This document shows, in pieces, positions 1,871 through 60,201 of a DNA stretch of 64,000 nucleotides. The stretch spans positions 806,001 through 870,000 of the forward strand of contig NIVC01000152.1 of assembly GCA_002269645.1 (NCBI GenBank), written 5' to 3'. Position 1 is the stretch's first letter. The number at the start of each line of letters is the position of its first letter. The notes under the pieces are model-generated. The model was not told the origin of the DNA. It saw nothing but the letters and a program-made list of their open reading frames with translations, and did no database searches. Position numbers and translations under genes: made by a program. The DNA comes from Macrostomum lignano (Eukaryota).

Positions 1871-3042
<1,172 letters not shown>

Positions 3043-4197
3043 TAATTTAATAAGAAGCCACTCTGCACTGCATAAAGTTGACCAACTTGTTTAGAATATA
3101 TATTGTGAGTTTGAATGTCCATTTCTAGACTTGCTGATCTCTCAGGTCAGAAATTTGCGTGCTGTCTATGGCCAAACTTGTCTTTGTTCGACAGGCTTTC
3201 AAGATAAATTGCGTTGCATCAAATGCGGTTTGCCAGTTCGACTAGCAAGGCTGGCAGTATCGAGCCAGCTCAAAGTGAGAAGACACCTAACACGAGCCGA
3301 GCACTCAGGATGGGCTTGGGGTGGATCGCTGGAACAAACGGATAAAATTCCCAAGCTGGCAAGCATTAATATTCATAATTCAGTTGGCAGCTCGACAGAC
3401 AGCGAAGGCTCGGCAAGGATTAGGGATAAGGACTCCGGACGACAAAGAGGCGGGGGGATTTTTTAGGCTGCCTAGCTATCCTTGTTTAGCTAGTGAAATT
3501 CCCAACAAGCTAAGATGCTTACTTCGAACATTGAAGGCCGACTAATTCTTAGATCACCTTCCCACACTCACTGAGAGTATTGAATCAGGCCGTCTGCCGT
3601 AGCAAAACCTTAGGTAGTTTTCCATGTTCCTCGCACTCAGATTGGGACACCGCATTTCAGCCCGACACAAGCTGAATTGACAGTCTAAGCCTATGATCTA
3701 TCTATAAATACATTCTAGAAGGGTAAAAGTACATGATCTACTCTATAAAATGTACTGTAAAATAAAGAGCTGCCGTCATTTGACGCATTAATTGCCTCAA
3801 AGTTTTGTTAGACGAGAATGATAAATGAGACTCTGATTCTGAAAGTCGAACTCTCAAAGCGTAAATACAGCCATAAATTTTCAAGGTGAGCAGCTAATCT
3901 TTGGGTAAGACCGGCACTCATAAATAAGCTCTTAATGCATGCTTACAAGCGTGCCCTAGCCTTACTAAAGCTATCTACCTGGCTGCCCGCCAACTACAGA
4001 CAAAGCAAAGCCGACGGAAGTGGCCTGTCAGCAAAATCAGCTGACGACAAGCTGGGTGAAGGGCGAGGCCGACCCGCCTTCCACTTTTCCTTATTTGCAT
4101 AATCAGTGAATAAATACAGTGGGCGAAACCGTGCTCTCATTTCTGCATGCTGGCGGGACGTGAAGATACACAAGCGTGGAAAGCATTATAGCCTAAA

Positions 4198-5645
4198 GGG
4201 GACAATTCTCGTAATGATTTGTGCCAATTCTCATGATTTGTGACGATTCTCATAATGATTTGTGACGATTCTGATAATGATTTGTGACGATTCTGATAAT
4301 GATTTGTGATGATTCTCATAATGATTTGTGACGATTCTGATAATGATTTGTGACGATTCTCGTAATGATTTGTGACGATTCTCGTAATGATTTGTGACGA
4401 TTCTCATAATGATTTGTGACGATTCTCATAATGATTTGTGACGATTCTGATAATGATTTGTGACGATTCTCATAATGATTTGTGAAAATTCTGATAATGA
4501 TTTGTGACGATTCTCATAATGATTTGTGACGATTCTCATAATGATTTGTGACGATTCTCATAATTATTTGTGATGATTCTGATAATGATTTGTGACGATT
4601 CTCATAATGATTTGTGACGATTCTCATAATGATTTGTGACGATTCTCATAATGATTTGTGACGATTCTCATAATGATTTTTGACGATTCTCATAATGATT
4701 TGTGATGATTCTGATAATGATTTGTGACGATTCTCGTAATGATTTGTGACGATTCTCGTAATGATTTGTGACGATTCTCATAATGATTTGTGACGATTCT
4801 GATAATGATTTGTGACGATTCTGATAATGATTTGTGACGATTCTCATAATGATTTGTGACGATTCTGATAATGATTTGTGACGATTCTCATAATGATTTC
4901 GGGACAATTCTCATAATGATTTCGGGACAATTCTCATAATGATTTGTGACGATTCTGATAATGATTTGTGACGATTCTCATAATGATTTGTGACGATTCT
5001 CATGATTTGTGACGATTCTGATAATGATTTGTGACGATTCTGATAATGATTTGTGACGATTCTGATAATGATTTGTGATGATTCTCATAATGATTTGTGA
5101 AAATTCTGATAATGATTTGTGATGATTCTGATAATGATTTGTGACGATTCTCATAATGATTTGTGACGATTCTGATAATGATTTGTGACGATTCTCATAA
5201 TGATTTGTGACGATTCTGATAATGATTTGTGACGATTCTGATAATGATTTGTGATGATTCTCATAATGATTTGTGAAAATTCTGATAATGATTTGTGATG
5301 ATTCTGATAATGATTTGTGACGATTCTCATAATGATTTCGGGACAATTCTTATAATGATTTCGGGACAATTCTCATAATGATTTGTGACGATTCTGATAA
5401 TGATTTGTGATGATTCTGATAATGATTTGTGACGATTCTCATAATGATTTCGGGACAATTCTCATAATGATTTGTGACGATTCTGATAATGATTTGTGAT
5501 GATTCTGATAATGATTTGTGACGATTCTCATAATGATTTCGGGACAATTCTCATAATGATTTCGGGAAAATTCTCATAATGATTTGTGACGATTCTGATA
5601 ATGATTTGTGACGATTCTCATAATGATTTGTGACGATTCTGATAA
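4198..5645. repeat. 22-bp minisatellite (SATAATGATTTGTGACGATTCT), ~65 copies
   Basis: Visible periodicity with C/G and GGGACA variants. Confidence 0.95.
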
Positions 5646-12810: not shown

Positions 12811-17673
<4,863 letters not shown>

Positions 17674-27863: not shown

Positions 27864-28180
27864 GGATGGGATAGCAGCCCACAGTGAAAGGGGATGGGAT
27901 GGCAGCCCACAGTGAAAGGGGATGGGATAGCAGCTCACAGTGAAAGGGGATGGGATAGCAGCTCACAGTGAAAGGGGATGGGATAGCAGCTCACAGTGAA
28001 AGGGGATGGGATAGCAGCTCACAGTGAAAGGGGATGGGATAGCAGCTCACAGTGAAAGGGGATGGGATAGCAGCTCACAGTGAAAGGGGATAAGATAGCA
28101 GCTCACAGTGAAAGGGGATGGGATAGCAGCCCACAGTGAAGGGGGGATGGAATAGCAGCTCACAGTGAAGGGAGGGATGG
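27864..28180. repeat. 28-bp minisatellite (GGGATGGGATAGCAGCTCACAGTGAAAG), ~11 copies
   Basis: Visible periodicity. Confidence 0.95.
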
Positions 28181-29352: not shown

Positions 29353-42447
<13,095 letters not shown>

Positions 42448-55100: not shown

Positions 55101-56247
55101 TTTTTTGAAAATAATTTACTTTTACAAAAGTTATAACAAGTTGTTATCGTCAAAGGTAACTTTTTCAAGTTTTTTAGATACCTGAATTAAACAGCTACGA
55201 CTATTATAAATTTTTCGTACGTTTTCTGGACTTTAATTTTAATTTCATTTATTCTGTTAGCACGTCGTAATAATTAGCCAGAACAAAACCTCTTGGTCAT
55301 TCAGGGCTTCAGGTGTTCCTGGCCTGGCCTAAAAACGCTCTAAGTGTTGATAGAAGCTCCATACTGAAAATCGATAGCGTTATGAGAATTAAATGTGTCT
55401 TATTTTAAAATCCGGCATGTTTTTTCTTGGGTGCAGGTACGATCGATATGCTATAGCTAGCCCAATTAAATGCTGTCGAGAAATTTGCTTGCCGAAATAT
55501 TCTAGCCGTAGTTTGCTAGCCGAAGCTTACAAGAAGGAATTTTGTAGCAAGGATTTTGCCAGCCGAACTTGGTGCCTTGTTCTCTTATTTGTTTGCTTAT
55601 TGACAAAGTTAGTCAGCCAACTCTCTGATCCGTACATGTTGTACGATCGTATTAAAGCTTCTAGCTCGTGCGGTCACTACCAGCTACATGTATACTTAGG
55701 CTGAGAGTGGTATGTTAGTATGTATGTTAAAACTTTAAGTACCTGCCTTCTGCGGTAAAACATAATCAATGTCAAAGAGCTAGATTAATCTATATTACGT
55801 GCAAAATCCAATTGCTACTAGCAAAATTCCTGCTAGTAGCAAACTTCATACATGTAGCTCCCATATAATTCTTGTTCAGTATTTCCATTAATTATAGAGA
55901 AACTGTTTTTGGTTCTTATACAGTAAATTGCACAATGAATCCATTTACATGTGCATACTGCAGCTAGCACTGAATTAAATAAAAGGGAGAACTCTCATTA
56001 GCCTTAGGTGTTAAGAGTAGCTGTATTACATGATGAATGTATGCCATGATTGAAAGCAGCTGATAACGACTAAAACAAATAAAGGTTCGCGATTTGCTTC
56101 TCTCGATCTCTAACCTTCAATAAGTATGTTTATTACTAATTCATGTTGGTTGCAATTTCTGATAGGATATTGATCATGCAAATTTGTTAAGCAATTCAGT
56201 GAAAATAGAGCCACAGGATACTGTTTCACGAATTGACGTTTGTCCAC

Positions 56248-59200
56248 CACAGTGTATTTCTTTGGTAAGATTTTTTGAAAAAAATGGCCACTCAAGATTT
56301 TTACCATCATTAATAGATCACATTTTTCTAGAGAGGAAGCCACAATATTAAAAAAATCTTGTCGAGCGGTTGCTGAGTAACTACTGTTTTTCTGTTTTTC
56401 ATGCTGTTTCATGCTGTTTTCATTTTTTTGCTTTGATACAGGCTATAATAGGCAAATTGGTATCAAAAACATTATTCAATGTTTTTCTTTCAACATTAAT
56501 AAATTATATTATTAGTATAAGTTTAAAGAATGCTTGTACAATATAAAAACTCAGCTTGAAACGTAGTTGTACAATGTCAATATAAATTACACATTAAGAG
56601 TGAAAACAATGTCAAAGTCCACACTGACTACATGTCCTACACATGTCGGCTATTATAATGACGCACAGCCTGAAGCAAATGACTTCCAAAGCTGGGATTT
56701 TCTACATCCTTGACCTTGAAGTTCGCCCATAGCTGCTGAAAGTCGTGGTGCACTGCTTCAGATGCCTGTTCACTCCAGGGACCAAGTCCTCGCTGTTGCA
56801 TCAAACAGAACTGTGGCACATGATGCAGCACTGTGTGAACTTTCGGTGTCACTGAGATCCCGAGGTCCATGAACGCCACTTGAAAATCAGCGATCGTCTG
56901 CTGGAAATTGGAGGCCAGTTCATTGCCAAAGCAGCTGGACACAACAAGCCTGAAGCAGCGCAGTGCAGCAACGTACGGCAAGCACTGTAGCGGGCACATC
57001 GATGCCAGAGCATCAACATTCTGCAGGAGCACTTTGCAGCTGTTGCCGGTAAAACTGCCGCCGTGAATTGCCTCCCTGGCGACGTGGCAGTGATGCAGCC
57101 ATCTGTCACACTCTGGCCACACTGACTGCATACTACAGTAAATGGTATTTACTACTCCAGTTAGCAGGTGCAGTTCGGGCGGTGGTACAATTTCTAGGAC
57201 CATTGTTGAGGCTGGGAAATTTTCTAGAAGACAGGGACGTACCACATTTCCAAAATTCTTGGCAGCTGCAAGCTTGGAGCCAGAAGCCTGGAAGTTTGCA
57301 TGGCTGTCTTCGAGAAGCTTCAGTGTGCGATCTGTGCCCTTCTGCAATAGCTTATTCTTGTGGGCATCGCACCAGCAGCAGGGATGAGCAGCACTGTGAG
57401 CCATAAGCCCAAGCAGCATGTTGCACAGCTTTAAGTCGCTAGCGATGGTAAATTTGCCTTGAAGACTGCTCAGTCCAGCTGCCCTCCACAGCAACTCCAG
57501 GTTCTGGTAATTTTCTTGAATGGCTGGTGCGATGGCTACAATAAGAATTCGTTTAACACCGGAGTGCTTTAGCCGACTGCTGCGAGAGTTGCTGCTACAG
57601 GCTGCCTGCGAAGGCTCAGTGGAGTCAACACACCAACTGGAATCAAACACAGACAGGCAGATCTTGAAGAACCCACCACCTCCATCAATGCCAACCTTAA
57701 TCATACAGGTCGATGGGTTCAGTTGTCTTTCTTGAATAATTTGCTCGAGAAGCTGCTGAATGCGCACACAAATAACAGCTGGACGTGATGTTACTTCTGT
57801 CACAACTCCTCGCTCCATGTTGACGAAGTCCAACTGTTGTAGTTCAAAAAAGCTGTCGAGCTGGTGGTGAATGTCAGACAGCTTTTGTTGGAGGTACGAC
57901 TCTACAGCTGTTTTTGAACCCGACGCTGCTCTAATATGGTGAGCCAGCTTCAGCATAGAGCGCGTGCTGAGGCCCATATCCTGCTGAATGCTCACCATGC
58001 TGCTGACGCTCAGCTGCTGTGGTTGCTTCGGCGTACTCTGAGATGGTGGCTCCACTTCCATGTAAAAGCCTTCTGCATTATGTGCCCTTGTAGCAGGAGT
58101 ACAGACATGTGACTTGCCTCGATTTAGCTGCGAGAGGCACTTCACACAGAGCTTCATGCTGACTGGGCGTCGAGTTTTTGACACAGTGCTGGCAGTGGGC
58201 TCGCAACCAATCCTACTTTGACTGTCAGCGCTTGGCCTTCCTCGTGGTCGCCGATTAACTGCTGCTGGATGTCCAAAGTTTGCGGAGCTTTCTCTGGCAG
58301 CCTGACACACAATACAGTTGCATCGAGTAGCTGCTCGGCTTCGTGTTCGAGGAGGCTGGGCTCCAATCTTAGAGTGGTCGAAGTCGGGCAGCGAGGACGA
58401 AAAGTTTCCTTTCTCGTACTCTAGCAGCGTTATCCTGCATTTTGTGCACAGAGCACTTGGTAGCCGATCGTCCTGCGTATCGTAGCCATGCATCTTGAAC
58501 TCTGAGATGAGTGACTGCATGTGCTCATTTATCCGGCGCATTTCCTTGCCCTTATGCATGCAGATGAGGCAGACGATGAGACGAGCATCTTCGTGCGTTC
58601 TGGCACTGCTGCTTTTACTCATAATGCCTAACACTGAGCGTGCTTGGTGTCGATTAAGAAAGGTGCTACACAACAAATCTGATATGTAATGAGACGCAGA
58701 GATTGCGCAATGAATATAAAAACTTCTCTAGTTAGATTAAAGTGAAATCAATCGATAAGAGCGACTTATATATATTCATTGATTGCTGAGCAGACAAGTT
58801 TTTAGCTCAGCAAACTTGTGTGCATTGCGCAATGTATAGCACACTATTTGATTGAGTAATAGATGAGTGACTGCGTTCTTCAACTCCAAATCATGCACAC
58901 ACAGTCTCCCCTCAATAGAGAAGTAGTACAGCTAGTACAAAACCTATTTGTTACATTCAATCACACAATTGTACCCTGTATTTTTGGAACATTCATTTTG
59001 ATTAGCATATGAAATGTGTGTAAAAAACAGCCTATTTGTTGGCTAAACAAATGGACCTTAAGCTTATAAGTGATTTTCTGTTTGAACTAGAAAAACAAAA
59101 ACAAATAGCACGAAACAGCATAAAACAGCATTAAAAACAGAAAAACAGTAGTTTCTTAGCAACTGCTCGATGGATTTTTTAAAGTCTTGTAGCATTCTCT

Positions 59201-59283
59201 CTGGACATACATGATCTATTGATGATAGTAAAAATCTGGGGTGGCCATTTTTTCAAAAAATGTCACCATAGAAATACACTGTG
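56248..59283 (-). mobile_element. Chapaev-type (RAG1/Transib-related DDE) DNA transposon, 3036 bp, apparently autonomous
   Basis: ~170-bp imperfect TIRs that both start CACAGTGTATTTCT, 4-bp TSD CCAC (56244-56247 and 59284-59287), and a single intact transposase ORF. Confidence 0.9.
56637..58622 (-). CDS. Chapaev-type transposase (661 aa from first ATG)
   Basis: N-terminal H-x7-CxxC...P..LCxxC zinc module and CxCxxC. Core motifs KVGIDGGGG (D), ASDLKL (D), HPCCWC, PELHLLTG, KVHTVLHH and WSEQASEAVH (E). No stops or frameshifts. Confidence 0.9.
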   Translation of the reverse strand: MSKSSSARTHEDARLIVCLICMHKGKEMRRINEHMQSLISEFKMHGYDTQDDRLPSALCTKCRITLLEYEKGNFSSSLPDFDHSKIGAQPPRTRSRAATRCNCIVCQAARESSANFGHPAAVNRRPRGRPSADSQSRIGCEPTASTVSKTRRPVSMKLCVKCLSQLNRGKSHVCTPATRAHNAEGFYMEVEPPSQSTPKQPQQLSVSSMVSIQQDMGLSTRSMLKLAHHIRAASGSKTAVESYLQQKLSDIHHQLDSFFELQQLDFVNMERGVVTEVTSRPAVICVRIQQLLEQIIQERQLNPSTCMIKVGIDGGGGFFKICLSVFDSSWCVDSTEPSQAACSSNSRSSRLKHSGVKRILIVAIAPAIQENYQNLELLWRAAGLSSLQGKFTIASDLKLCNMLLGLMAHSAAHPCCWCDAHKNKLLQKGTDRTLKLLEDSHANFQASGSKLAAAKNFGNVVRPCLLENFPASTMVLEIVPPPELHLLTGVVNTIYCSMQSVWPECDRWLHHCHVAREAIHGGSFTGNSCKVLLQNVDALASMCPLQCLPYVAALRCFRLVVSSCFGNELASNFQQTIADFQVAFMDLGISVTPKVHTVLHHVPQFCLMQQRGLGPWSEQASEAVHHDFQQLWANFKVKDVENPSFGSHLLQAVRHYNSRHV

Positions 59284-60201
59284 CCACATTTATCTCTTTG
59301 TTAAATCAGGATAGCAGAGTTCAGGCTCGATTCTTGGGGCAAGCTAGCGGAGCAGTTGAGGAGGCGAAGAGGCGGAGAGCCGGAGCGGCGAGGGGGGCGA
59401 GGACACGAGCGCAGGAGGGCGAGAGGGGACCAAGGGACGAGGGCGGACAGGCTTCATTCTCACTGAACGCTAGTATATATATGATTTCTATAACCCATTT
59501 CATTGGTGTTCGCTTCACGCAATAGGATCTTTACTGCCGCACAAGCATGTGCTGTTCTTTCCTGATAGAAAATCCTTCTAAAGTTCGCAGTAGACTAAAA
59601 AATAACATTGGGCATAACATGCTCAAATTAAGATCACTTCCTTACTACCAAGGTTTTAAAACTGCTTCACAGGAAAAAAAATCAGTTCGGAGAAGTCGAC
59701 TCACGCGCATGTTCATGATCAACTCAGGCGTTAGAAAAAAATCTGGTGGGCACGTGAGTATTTATAAAAAAATTAAAGAATTTCAGATATATACTTTTGG
59801 TAAAAATATAATTCTAGAGTTTGTAAAAAGCGATGTGTTATGAAGGACCGAAAGCAGCAACACCTTGAAGTACTTGCAGGTGGGAAGAGCCAGCAGACCC
59901 AAATTCTGAGCTCCAATCTGGAACCATGATGAGGGTACTCAAACAACAAAATAGGTTGTTCGAACAGCTACATGTATAGGTTAGTTTCTGAACAGGACAG
60001 AATAAAATAGATAGCTGGTGCAGTAGAGCCTTTAAAACTTAACTTTTTAACCAAAACCATGAAGTAAAACAACAAAAAGCAATTTATTACAGAGTTAAGT
60101 TGATTAGACTCACAGCAAGAAGCTAGGCTACATGGTGCATGCGAGGACTTCATGAGGATTTTAGCATAAAGATGCTAAAAGACTCAATGAATCAAGCACT
60201 A

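Follow-up and report, generated by a model that had tools for sequence, protein, structure and literature searches.

We analysed a stretch of 64,000 nucleotides of the Macrostomum lignano genome (contig NIVC01000152.1; hereafter the window, in whose numbering all coordinates are given), and we are confident that its positions 56248-59283 are an autonomous cut-and-paste DNA transposon, intact in structure, which belongs to the Chapaev group (CMC-Chapaev in the nomenclature of RepeatMasker). The element is 3,036 bp long and lies, with long terminal inverted repeats (TIRs), between two exact copies of a 4-bp duplication of its target site (TSD). Both of its termini, read inward, begin with the consensus heptamer of the recombination signal sequence (RSS). 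The only gene of the element codes for a transposase that is predicted to have the architecture of the RAG1/Transib core, with an RNase H-like domain (D313, D396, and E622) interrupted by a large helical insertion; in the model this insertion carries a predicted C2H2 zinc site (C415, C418, H596, and H601), and a CHAPA zinc domain precedes the core. The features of the element and of its protein are collected in Table 1.

Boundaries and ends of the element

An earlier note on this DNA, made from its letters alone, had described CACAGTG at both termini, TIRs of ~170 bp, and the 4-bp TSD CCAC. All three are confirmed. The heptamer stands at the left end and, as its reverse complement, at the right end, and the two copies of CCAC are exact and lie directly outside both heptamers. 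The TIRs extend over ~170 to 195 bp at 84 to 86% identity: a repeat search found a terminal arm of 36 nt with 92% identity and another arm of 163 nt with 79%, blastn between the arms aligned 173 bp at 84%, and MAFFT of both element ends gave ~195 alignable columns at 86% identity, in which the outer 14 bases are identical. This 14-mer, CACAGTGTATTTCT, is present in the 64-kb window at both element ends only. Read in one orientation, the two arms have different bases next to the heptamer on its outer side (C in one, G in the other), and the boundary of the element is therefore unambiguous.

The heptamer taken alone is weak evidence because CACAGTG is common in the window, with 24 occurrences against 7.8 expected. 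This excess is largely due to a 28-bp tandem array at 27880-28167 (plus strand), in which CACAGTG occurs 11 times at a spacing of 28 bp (once 29 bp), so that 11 of the 24 occurrences fall inside it. The ends of the element are nevertheless not a matter of chance, since long TIRs and an exact 4-bp TSD (1 in 256 by chance) are found precisely at its outer edges. The element integrated by a 4-bp staggered cut, leaving the CCAC duplication.

Table 1. Features of the element, of its transposase, and of the correspondences between the transposase and mouse RAG1
Feature	Position	Strand	Basis or remark
TSD, left copy, CCAC	56244..56247		Direct reading; same as 59284-59287
Left terminal heptamer, CACAGTG	56248..56254	+	Direct reading; same as consensus RSS heptamer
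Left TIR, ~170-195 bp	56248..56440	+	Repeat search, MAFFT, blastn; 3' terminus in gene orientation
Nonamer-like A-tract, left, AAAAAAATG	56278..56286	+	23 bp inside left heptamer; 8/9 against AAAAAAATC
Subterminal ~10-bp direct repeats, CATGCTGTTT x 2.6	56392..56423	+	Repeat search; inner edge of left TIR; possibly extra (putative) transposase-binding sites
Single-exon transposase gene (661 aa and a stop codon)	56637..58622	-	ORF list, translation; ATG 58622, stop 56637-56639
Non-coding, ~470 bp between start codon and right TIR	58623..59090	-	No ORF of at least 80 aa; presumed promoter and 5' untranslated region
Right TIR	59091..59283	-	Repeat search, MAFFT, blastn
Subterminal ~10-bp repeats, AAACAGCATA x 3.6	59113..59148	+	Inner edge of right TIR, mirroring left arm
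Nonamer-like A-tract, right, inward GAAAAAATG	59246..59254	-	Spacer 22; 7/9 against Transib nonamer
Right terminal heptamer, CACTGTG on plus strand	59277..59283	-	Direct reading; CACAGTG inward
TSD, right copy, CCAC	59284..59287		Direct reading
CHAPA zinc domain	Residues 10-110		H10, C18, C21, C59, C62, C101, C103, C106
RPRGRP, AT-hook-like motif	Residues 124-129		In disordered linker after CHAPA domain
Second zinc knuckle	C159/C162/H172
RNase H-like core with D313 and D396	Residues ~305-400
Other conserved motifs	C415-x2-C418, L484-H485, H596-x4-H601, E622
ASD396LKL	D396		hhalign: mouse RAG1 GYD708EKL
C415xxC418	C415, C418		hhalign: mouse RAG1 C727xxC730
PPELH485	H485		hhalign: mouse RAG1 ALH795 region
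H596xxxxH601VP	H596, H601		hhalign: mouse RAG1 H937xxxxH942VP
WSEQASE622	E622		hhalign: mouse RAG1 WASEGNE962

The transposase and its family

The transposase is encoded on the minus strand by an open reading frame (ORF) of 1,986 nt which runs without interruption, in line with the earlier note, and whose start matches the N termini of homologues. The same note had seen no RAG2-like ORF, and this too holds: according to the ORF list, the element contains no second gene and no RAG2-like ORF, the transposase being its sole non-artefact ORF of at least 80 residues.

A word-indexed search yielded 82 homologues of the protein, the best of them 43% identical, and the only named ones among the 82 are uncharacterised proteins from Brassicogethes aeneus and M. 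lignano. We aligned 45 full-length members of the family and derived a profile from this alignment. Run against 1.84 billion representatives, the profile matched 10,913 clusters at an E value of at most 1e-3, 5,795 at 1e-10 or below, and 1,721 at 1e-30 or below. The family is very abundant.

Conservation in the 45-sequence alignment follows the motifs of Table 1. The core columns D313, D396, C415, C418, E483-L484-H485, H596, H601, E618, and E622 are invariant or nearly invariant, with D313, D396, C415/C418, L484-H485, H596/H601, and E622 being invariant or at least 90% conserved, and the motifs quoted in the earlier note are all present on columns of this kind. The N-terminal zinc ligands are conserved as well, both those of the CHAPA domain (H10, C18, C21, C59, C62, C101, C103, and C106, in the pattern H-x7-C-x2-C ... 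C-x2-C ... C-x-C-x2-C) and those of the zinc knuckle that follows it (C159, C162, and H172), and the GRP motif in the linker behind the CHAPA domain is kept across the family. Of the 20 invariant and 57 nearly invariant positions of the family, the window protein has lost none.

DUF1280 (PF06918), a Caenorhabditis family of "unknown function", matches 7 of the 45 family members, with a best E value of 6e-7, and matches the window protein weakly (E 0.21) at residues ~181-326. It may represent the part of a Chapaev/CMC-type transposase that comprises the region ahead of the RNase H domain together with the first catalytic strand.

Assignment to the Chapaev group

Chapaev was described in 2007 by Kapitonov and Jurka in Repbase Reports. 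As hallmarks it has a TSD of 3 to 4 bp, termini that invariably read CAC/GTG, and a transposase with the C(2)C, LH, and H(4)H motifs (PMC4079192), while Chapaev3 is distinguished by 3-bp TWA duplications (PMC4079192, PMC3014272). Kapitonov and Koonin, who in 2015 published the link of Chapaev to RAG1/Transib and ranked it among the clades of the Transib superfamily, also defined the CHAPA zinc domain as common to Chapaev, Chapaev3, TransibSU, and the N-terminal region of RAG1 (PMC4411706). RepeatMasker has a CMC-Transib grouping (bioRxiv 10.64898/2026.08.26.747230).

The element has each of the Chapaev hallmarks and lacks those of Chapaev3. Its TSD, CCAC, has the 4 bp of Chapaev (3 to 4 bp in the wider group), and another M. 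lignano element (L008, see below) has an exact GTAT; its termini read CACAGTG...CACTGTG, and four relatives likewise begin with CAC; and its DDE transposase carries C(2)C, LH, and H(4)H. The N terminus points the same way. We transcribed CHAPA reference sequences from supplementary file 5 of PMC4411706, with some noise from optical character recognition, and compared the window protein with them by BLASTP, in which residues 10-166 gave the matches. The best match was Chapaev-2_HM with 59 bits (30% identity over 159 residues and an E value of 2e-14, which refers to this small set), followed by Chapaev-1_HM (39 bits), Chapaev-5_HM (31 bits), and Chapaev-1_AA (27 bits), and nothing significant was obtained in the set for Chapaev3, Chapaev-1_BF/NV, or RAG1 itself. 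From these matches, we therefore place the element in the RING-less Chapaev subgroup (Chapaev-1/2/5_HM and Chapaev-1_AA), as a distinct family. The Chapaev assignment is thus supported by five features, namely the 4-bp TSD, the CAC...GTG termini, the motifs, the CHAPA matches, and the lack of a match to Chapaev3 N termini; the earlier note had likewise preferred Chapaev over Transib or ProtoRAG.

With the Hydra elements Chapaev-1/2/5_HM and Chapaev-1_AA of Aedes aegypti, the element shares the 4-bp TSD, termini of the form CAC...GTG, a transposase that is encoded by one ORF and bears the C(2)C, LH, and H(4)H motifs, the same CHAPA ligand pattern, and a GRP motif just behind the CHAPA domain. 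It differs from them in its flatworm host and in sequence, with only 24 to 30% identity as compared over the N-terminal region. Chapaev3 (the Merrow, Garfield, and Conan families), CACTA/EnSpm, and Mirage also have CAC termini and the C(2)C, LH, and H(4)H motifs in their DDE core, but each departs from the element in other respects: Chapaev3 has the 3-bp TWA TSD and an N terminus that begins with C instead of H, whereas the element has the 4-bp CCAC and no significant BLASTP match to Chapaev3 N termini; CACTA has a 3-bp TSD, CACTA ends, and usually a second gene; and Mirage has a 2-bp TSD. The novelty of the element is low, given that Chapaev has been known since 2007, that its RAG1/Transib kinship and the shared CHAPA domain are already published (PMC4411706), and that the profile reaches more than 10,000 clusters. 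What is new here is a family-level member of a known, abundant group.

Relationship to RAG1 and Transib

We modelled the protein with AlphaFold2 on the 45-sequence alignment and obtained a mean predicted local distance difference test score of 87 and a predicted TM-score of 0.70, with low confidence only in the linkers at residues 115-152, 187-196, and 336-350. The earlier note had proposed a structural comparison with RAG1 and HzTransib, and in a Foldseek search of the PDB with this model the 31 matches at E values of at most 1e-3 were exclusively RAG1, amphioxus RAG1L (BbRAG1L), or HzTransib. The best match was RAG1 (4WWX_E, E 6.7e-12, 602 columns, TM 0.49/0.54), with BbRAG1L (6B40) at 4e-7 and HzTransib (6PQX) at 8e-7. 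Beyond these three, the next match had an E value of 0.1, and no other DDE/RNase H enzyme (hAT, Tc1/mariner, or integrase) was found below 0.1.

Alignment of the family profile with the mouse RAG1 core by hhalign (with a RAG1 sequence checked against the PDB) covered 219 columns at an E value of 1.1e-4 and a probability of 56%. It places the second aspartate, both pairs of zinc ligands, the LH motif, and the glutamate in register with RAG1 (Table 1). A greedy alignment (mact 0.01) for the first aspartate gave near-zero-confidence columns, pairing β-1 of the window protein with β-2 of RAG1, and was not used. In the model, D313 lies at the end of β-1 (residues 306-315) and D396 just past β-4 (392-395), within a β1-β2-β3-α1-β4 unit; since these are the canonical RNase H-fold positions of D600 and D708, we infer that D313 corresponds to RAG1 D600.

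The landmarks that the earlier note had read from the sequence fare accordingly. Its equivalents of D708, C727/C730, H937/H942, and E962 are recovered by hhalign, whereas its pairing of GIDG with D600 is unreliable there and is based on the topology of the RNase H fold in the model. For the RAG1-like N-terminal module that it had described, the CHAPA ligands are in place and the domain is published as common with RAG1 (PMC4411706), but the BLASTP comparison with RAG1 is not significant. Together, Foldseek and hhalign point to the RAG1-core fold with its DDE triad and C2H2 zinc site, the first aspartate by topology only. The relationship with RAG1 and Transib is real and agrees both with the published ranking of Chapaev among the clades of the Transib superfamily (PMC4411706) and with the CMC-Transib grouping of RepeatMasker (bioRxiv 10.64898/2026.08.26.747230).

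Mouse RAG1 (PDB 4WWX and others) and BbRAG1L (PDB 6B40) are the best structural matches, with E values of 7e-12 to 4e-7 over ~570 to 610 columns, at ~12 to 13% identity in the structural alignment. RAG1 has a CHAPA-type N-terminal zinc module as well (PMC4411706), and the terminal heptamer of the element is the same as the RSS consensus, at an RSS23-like distance from an A-tract. Unlike RAG1 and RAG1L, the element has no RAG2/RAG2L gene, no RING finger, and a TSD of 4 instead of 5 bp, and unlike RAG1, which is a domesticated recombinase, it is a mobile element and has the same ~23-bp spacing at both ends. HzTransib (PDB 6PQN, 6PQX, and 6PQY) resembles it in the predicted core (TM 0.44 for the query and 0.58 for the target), and Transib generally resembles it in the DDE triad and C2H2 zinc site straddling a large insertion domain and in having no RAG2 partner. 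Transib differs from it in its 5-bp TSD, in its TIRs of ~38 bp against ~170 to 195 bp here, in reportedly having no domain beyond the core (PMC4411706) where the element has a CHAPA domain and a zinc knuckle, and in a sequence similarity to the window protein that is below detection by hidden Markov models.

Heptamer, spacer, and nonamer

The consensus of Transib TIRs is CACAATG followed by a variable 23-bp spacer and AAAAAAATC, and it has been set beside RSS23 (PMC1131882). The left end of the element follows this layout, with CACAGTG, 23 bp, and AAAAAAATG, and the right end does so with a slightly shorter spacer and a poorer nonamer match (Table 1). A 12/23-type asymmetry of the ends was considered and rejected, spacers of 11 to 13 bp giving matches at only 3 to 4 of the nine positions. 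Because both arms carry 22- to 23-bp spacing, nothing suggests a 12/23 rule.

To compare these ends with those of relatives, we searched 18 related loci for TIRs and could define termini in L001, L004, L008, and L015 only. The B. aeneus element (L004) has CACGGTG at both ends of 134-bp TIRs that are 99% identical; a metagenome contig (L001) also has CACGGTG at both ends, its right flank lying beyond the contig end; the other M. lignano lineage (L008), whose protein is 31% identical, has CACAGGT at both ends; and a degraded copy on a Tara marine contig (L015) has CACAGCG and CACAGTG. The conserved core of the ends is CAC[A/G]G, and the perfect RSS heptamer is therefore one variant among several. 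As for the other loci, L013 and L018 begin inside their own TIRs, L010 is a multi-exon gene model that has swallowed a fragment, and no convincing inverted repeats were found in L003, L005, L006, L007, L009, L011, L012, L014, and L016, their contigs being too short or their copies degraded.

Two of these loci deserve comment in their own right. The beetle (L004) and metagenome (L001) elements, which are unrelated, both have GGTC directly outside the left CACGGTG, with CGTC as the right flank in the beetle; this may be a target-site preference or an extra conserved terminal base. L008 (M. lignano NIVC01000136.1, element at ~2262-5483) represents a second, very different Chapaev lineage with ~265-bp TIRs and sits in an intron-like part of a gene model with an MIF4G domain. 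This copy is probably dead, as the annotated protein BOX15_Mlig027848g1 loses frame just before the H(4)H motif.

The nonamer recurs in the relatives. Against the Transib nonamer, L008 and L015 each match at 8 of nine positions at a spacer of 22, and L001 matches at 7 of nine, so that an A-rich nonamer (AAAAAAAT[G/T]) stands at a spacer of 21 to 24 bp in four of the five lineages with defined ends. A match equally good is found at only 2.5 to 11% of the other offsets in the own 180-nt arm, and the spacers share just 2 to 10 of 22 bases between lineages. A conserved heptamer, a free spacer, and a conserved A-rich block form the pattern known from RSS and Transib. In the open-access literature, we found no statement on RSS-like heptamers or nonamers in Chapaev TIRs; the original descriptions in Repbase Reports lie outside that scope, and the finding is no proof of novelty.

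Evidence against this reading and alternatives to it

A number of results speak against an active, RAG1-related Chapaev element with RSS-like ends. At the sequence level, a Pfam scan of the window protein gave only sub-threshold noise (RICH, zf-AD, and DUF1280) and no RAG1 family, and neither phmmer with the protein nor hmmsearch with the 45-sequence profile found RAG1 or Transib among all PDB sequences. The hhalign probability is just 56% and the first aspartate is not reliably placed by it, and Foldseek TM-scores of ~0.5 are those expected for a multi-domain protein in another conformation, not those of a tight superposition. Two of the relatives lack a clean TSD (flanks GGTC/CGTC in L004 and GTAT/TGAT in L015), and L004 is without the A-tract, as one lineage of five. 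As regards activity, the TIR arms differ by 14 to 16%; the element is single copy in the 64-kb window, in which we found no further copies, fragments, derivatives of the miniature inverted-repeat type, or empty site; and an exact look-up of the protein in a public collection of 15 billion sequences did not find it. The only matches that phmmer and hmmsearch returned from the PDB were to tropomyosin; these are spurious and due to a coiled coil meeting the low-complexity linker.

The lack of any sequence-level match to RAG1 or Transib would suit a generic CMC-type DDE transposon of the CACTA or Mirage kind, whose RAG1 resemblance would come down to an RNase H fold with coincidental CxxC and HxxxxH motifs and whose CACAGTG would be a chance variant of CAC...GTG. 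The exact RSS heptamer is indeed not conserved among the relatives, which end in CACGGTG, CACAGGT, or CACAGCG, it is frequent in the window, and Foldseek cannot tell whether CACTA and Mirage are equally RAG1-like, as the PDB holds no structure of either. Such a transposon is nonetheless a most improbable explanation. The Foldseek matches run over ~570 to 610 columns to RAG1, RAG1L, and HzTransib and to no other DDE/RNase H enzyme at E values below 0.1; hhalign brings the second aspartate, both zinc-ligand pairs, the LH motif, and the glutamate into register; the CHAPA domain is described as restricted to Chapaev, TransibSU, and RAG1 (PMC4411706); the TSD has 4 bp where Mirage has 2 and CACTA 3; and the layout of heptamer, spacer, and nonamer recurs in four of five lineages.

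We give equally little credence to the possibility that the element is Transib proper or a RAG-like (ProtoRAG/RAGL) transposon instead of Chapaev. As in Transib, its ends resemble an RSS, having a spacer of 23 bp and an A-rich nonamer, and its predicted fold is RAG1/Transib-like. However, its TSD has 4 bp where Transib in the narrow sense has 5, it has one ORF and none that is RAG2-like where ProtoRAG/RAGL has a RAG1/RAG2-like gene pair, and its N terminus matches the CHAPA domain of Chapaev, whereas canonical Transib reportedly lacks any domain beyond the core (PMC4411706). At the sequence level, phmmer with the RAG1 core does not find the window protein, and the family profile finds neither RAG1 nor Transib. 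The TSD alone is weak evidence against Transib because TSD length varies inside Transib (bioRxiv 10.64898/2026.08.26.747230).

Activity and age

With the element taken as Chapaev, recent activity is plausible and consistent with the data, and current mobility is conceivable at somewhat less than an even chance. The perfect TSD, the identical outer 14 bases, and the open frame of 661 codons with every conserved residue point to activity. The earlier note had also taken retained CpGs as a sign of youth, and this is not borne out: the element has an observed/expected ratio of CpG of 0.61, and the window one of 0.78.

A genuine Chapaev insertion that is no longer mobile, that is, an older single- or low-copy relic whose ORF is open by chance or has been kept for a host function, would explain why the TIR arms are just 84 to 86% identical, why no second copy, fragment, or empty site is seen in the window, and why the exact protein is absent from the 15-billion-protein collection, its nearest relative being 43% identical. 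The CpG ratio, showing no youth, fits a relic too, as does the fate of the other M. lignano lineage (P0071/L008), whose C terminus is scrambled with loss of the H(4)H and E motifs. We regard such a relic as possible though unlikely, for the TSD is perfect, the outer 14 bases of the ends are identical, and the 1,986-nt ORF is uninterrupted with all family-invariant residues kept. Unequal ends are found in many transposons. Because neutral decay of 14 to 16% is unlikely to have spared an ORF of 661 codons, the differences between the arms are probably intrinsic to the family.

Proposed mechanism

For an active Chapaev element, the 4-bp stagger is given by the CCAC duplication, and the ends are built from a heptamer conserved as CAC[A/G]G.., a spacer of 21 to 23 bp that is free in sequence, and an A-rich nonamer, which is the layout of Transib TIRs and RSS23. 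The remaining steps are modelled on the biochemistry of RAG1 and HzTransib. A dimer of the transposase would pair both ends. Its active site would take up the heptamer, and the A-tract would be recognised by an NBD-like region, by the conserved GRP AT-hook, or by both. In RAG1, GGRPR reads the nonamer, and by analogy the RPRGRP motif could read the A-tract. The enzyme would nick at the border between heptamer and flank, and the freed 3'-OH would then attack the opposite strand, closing the flanking DNA with a hairpin and leaving the transposon blunt-ended. Both ends would finally be inserted 4 bp apart, without a RAG2-like partner.

Taken together, these considerations allow a wider proposal that we put forward as tentative and, as a whole, rather doubtful: Chapaev ends may be a true bipartite RSS23-like signal, with a heptamer, a spacer of ~22 to 23 bp, and an A-rich nonamer read by an NBD-like/AT-hook module; the transposase may cut by RAG/Transib hairpin chemistry without RAG2; the RSS architecture may be older than the split of Transib and Chapaev; and this copy may still be active.

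Genomic surroundings

The insertion lies 75 bp to the left of a purine-rich and G-rich stretch of low complexity (59358-59428, plus strand), which consists of ~2.2 copies of a 31-bp unit (GAGGGGCGAAGACACGAG...). An extreme strand asymmetry is seen at 32001-34000, where over 2 kb the GC skew is 0.60 and the AT skew 0.46, one strand being almost all purine; two long overlapping minus-strand ORFs at 31923-33156 overlap this region and are probably low-complexity artefacts.

The window also contains what looks like a non-LTR retrotransposon (a long interspersed nuclear element, which has no long terminal repeats), possibly largely intact, at 12949-17673 on the plus strand. Its long ORFs are at 12949-13872, at 13872-15350 with an Exo_endo_phos_2 (endonuclease-reverse-transcriptase) domain (E 9e-23), and at 16372-17673 with RNase H (E 2e-13). 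On the minus strand, an ORF of 595 residues at 40170-41957 has a DEAD/DEAH helicase domain. It matches one M. lignano protein, an "RNA helicase", at 100% over 25% coverage and another, annotated as a peptidylprolyl isomerase, at 89% over 44% coverage. These matches identify the host as M. lignano or a very close relative, and the difference between them points to paralogous copies or to gene models that were wrongly joined.

Significance

The importance of the element is limited by the fact that its family is very common, with thousands of clusters and many full-length ORFs, and that its kinship with RAG1 is already published. Worth keeping are the model-based support for a RAG1-type architecture and the layout of heptamer, spacer, and nonamer across several Chapaev lineages. 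To our knowledge, Chapaev transposases are the most distant known RAG1 relatives that share both the catalytic core and part of the N-terminal zinc region, and we know of no Chapaev transposase that has been studied biochemically or structurally. An intact-looking copy with clean ends is therefore a reasonable starting construct for the first biochemistry of a Chapaev transposase. It would serve the question of whether the ancestor of the entire RAG1/Transib/Chapaev assemblage already recognised a nonamer and cleaved at a heptamer with hairpin formation, as well as the questions of what sets the stagger at 4 or 5 bp and what RAG2 added. The element could possibly also be tried as an endogenous gene-transfer vector for M. 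lignano. If the tentative proposal made above were true, the RSS architecture would not be an invention of Transib and RAG, and the element would provide the first biochemically testable Chapaev enzyme, in a flatworm already used as a transgenesis model.

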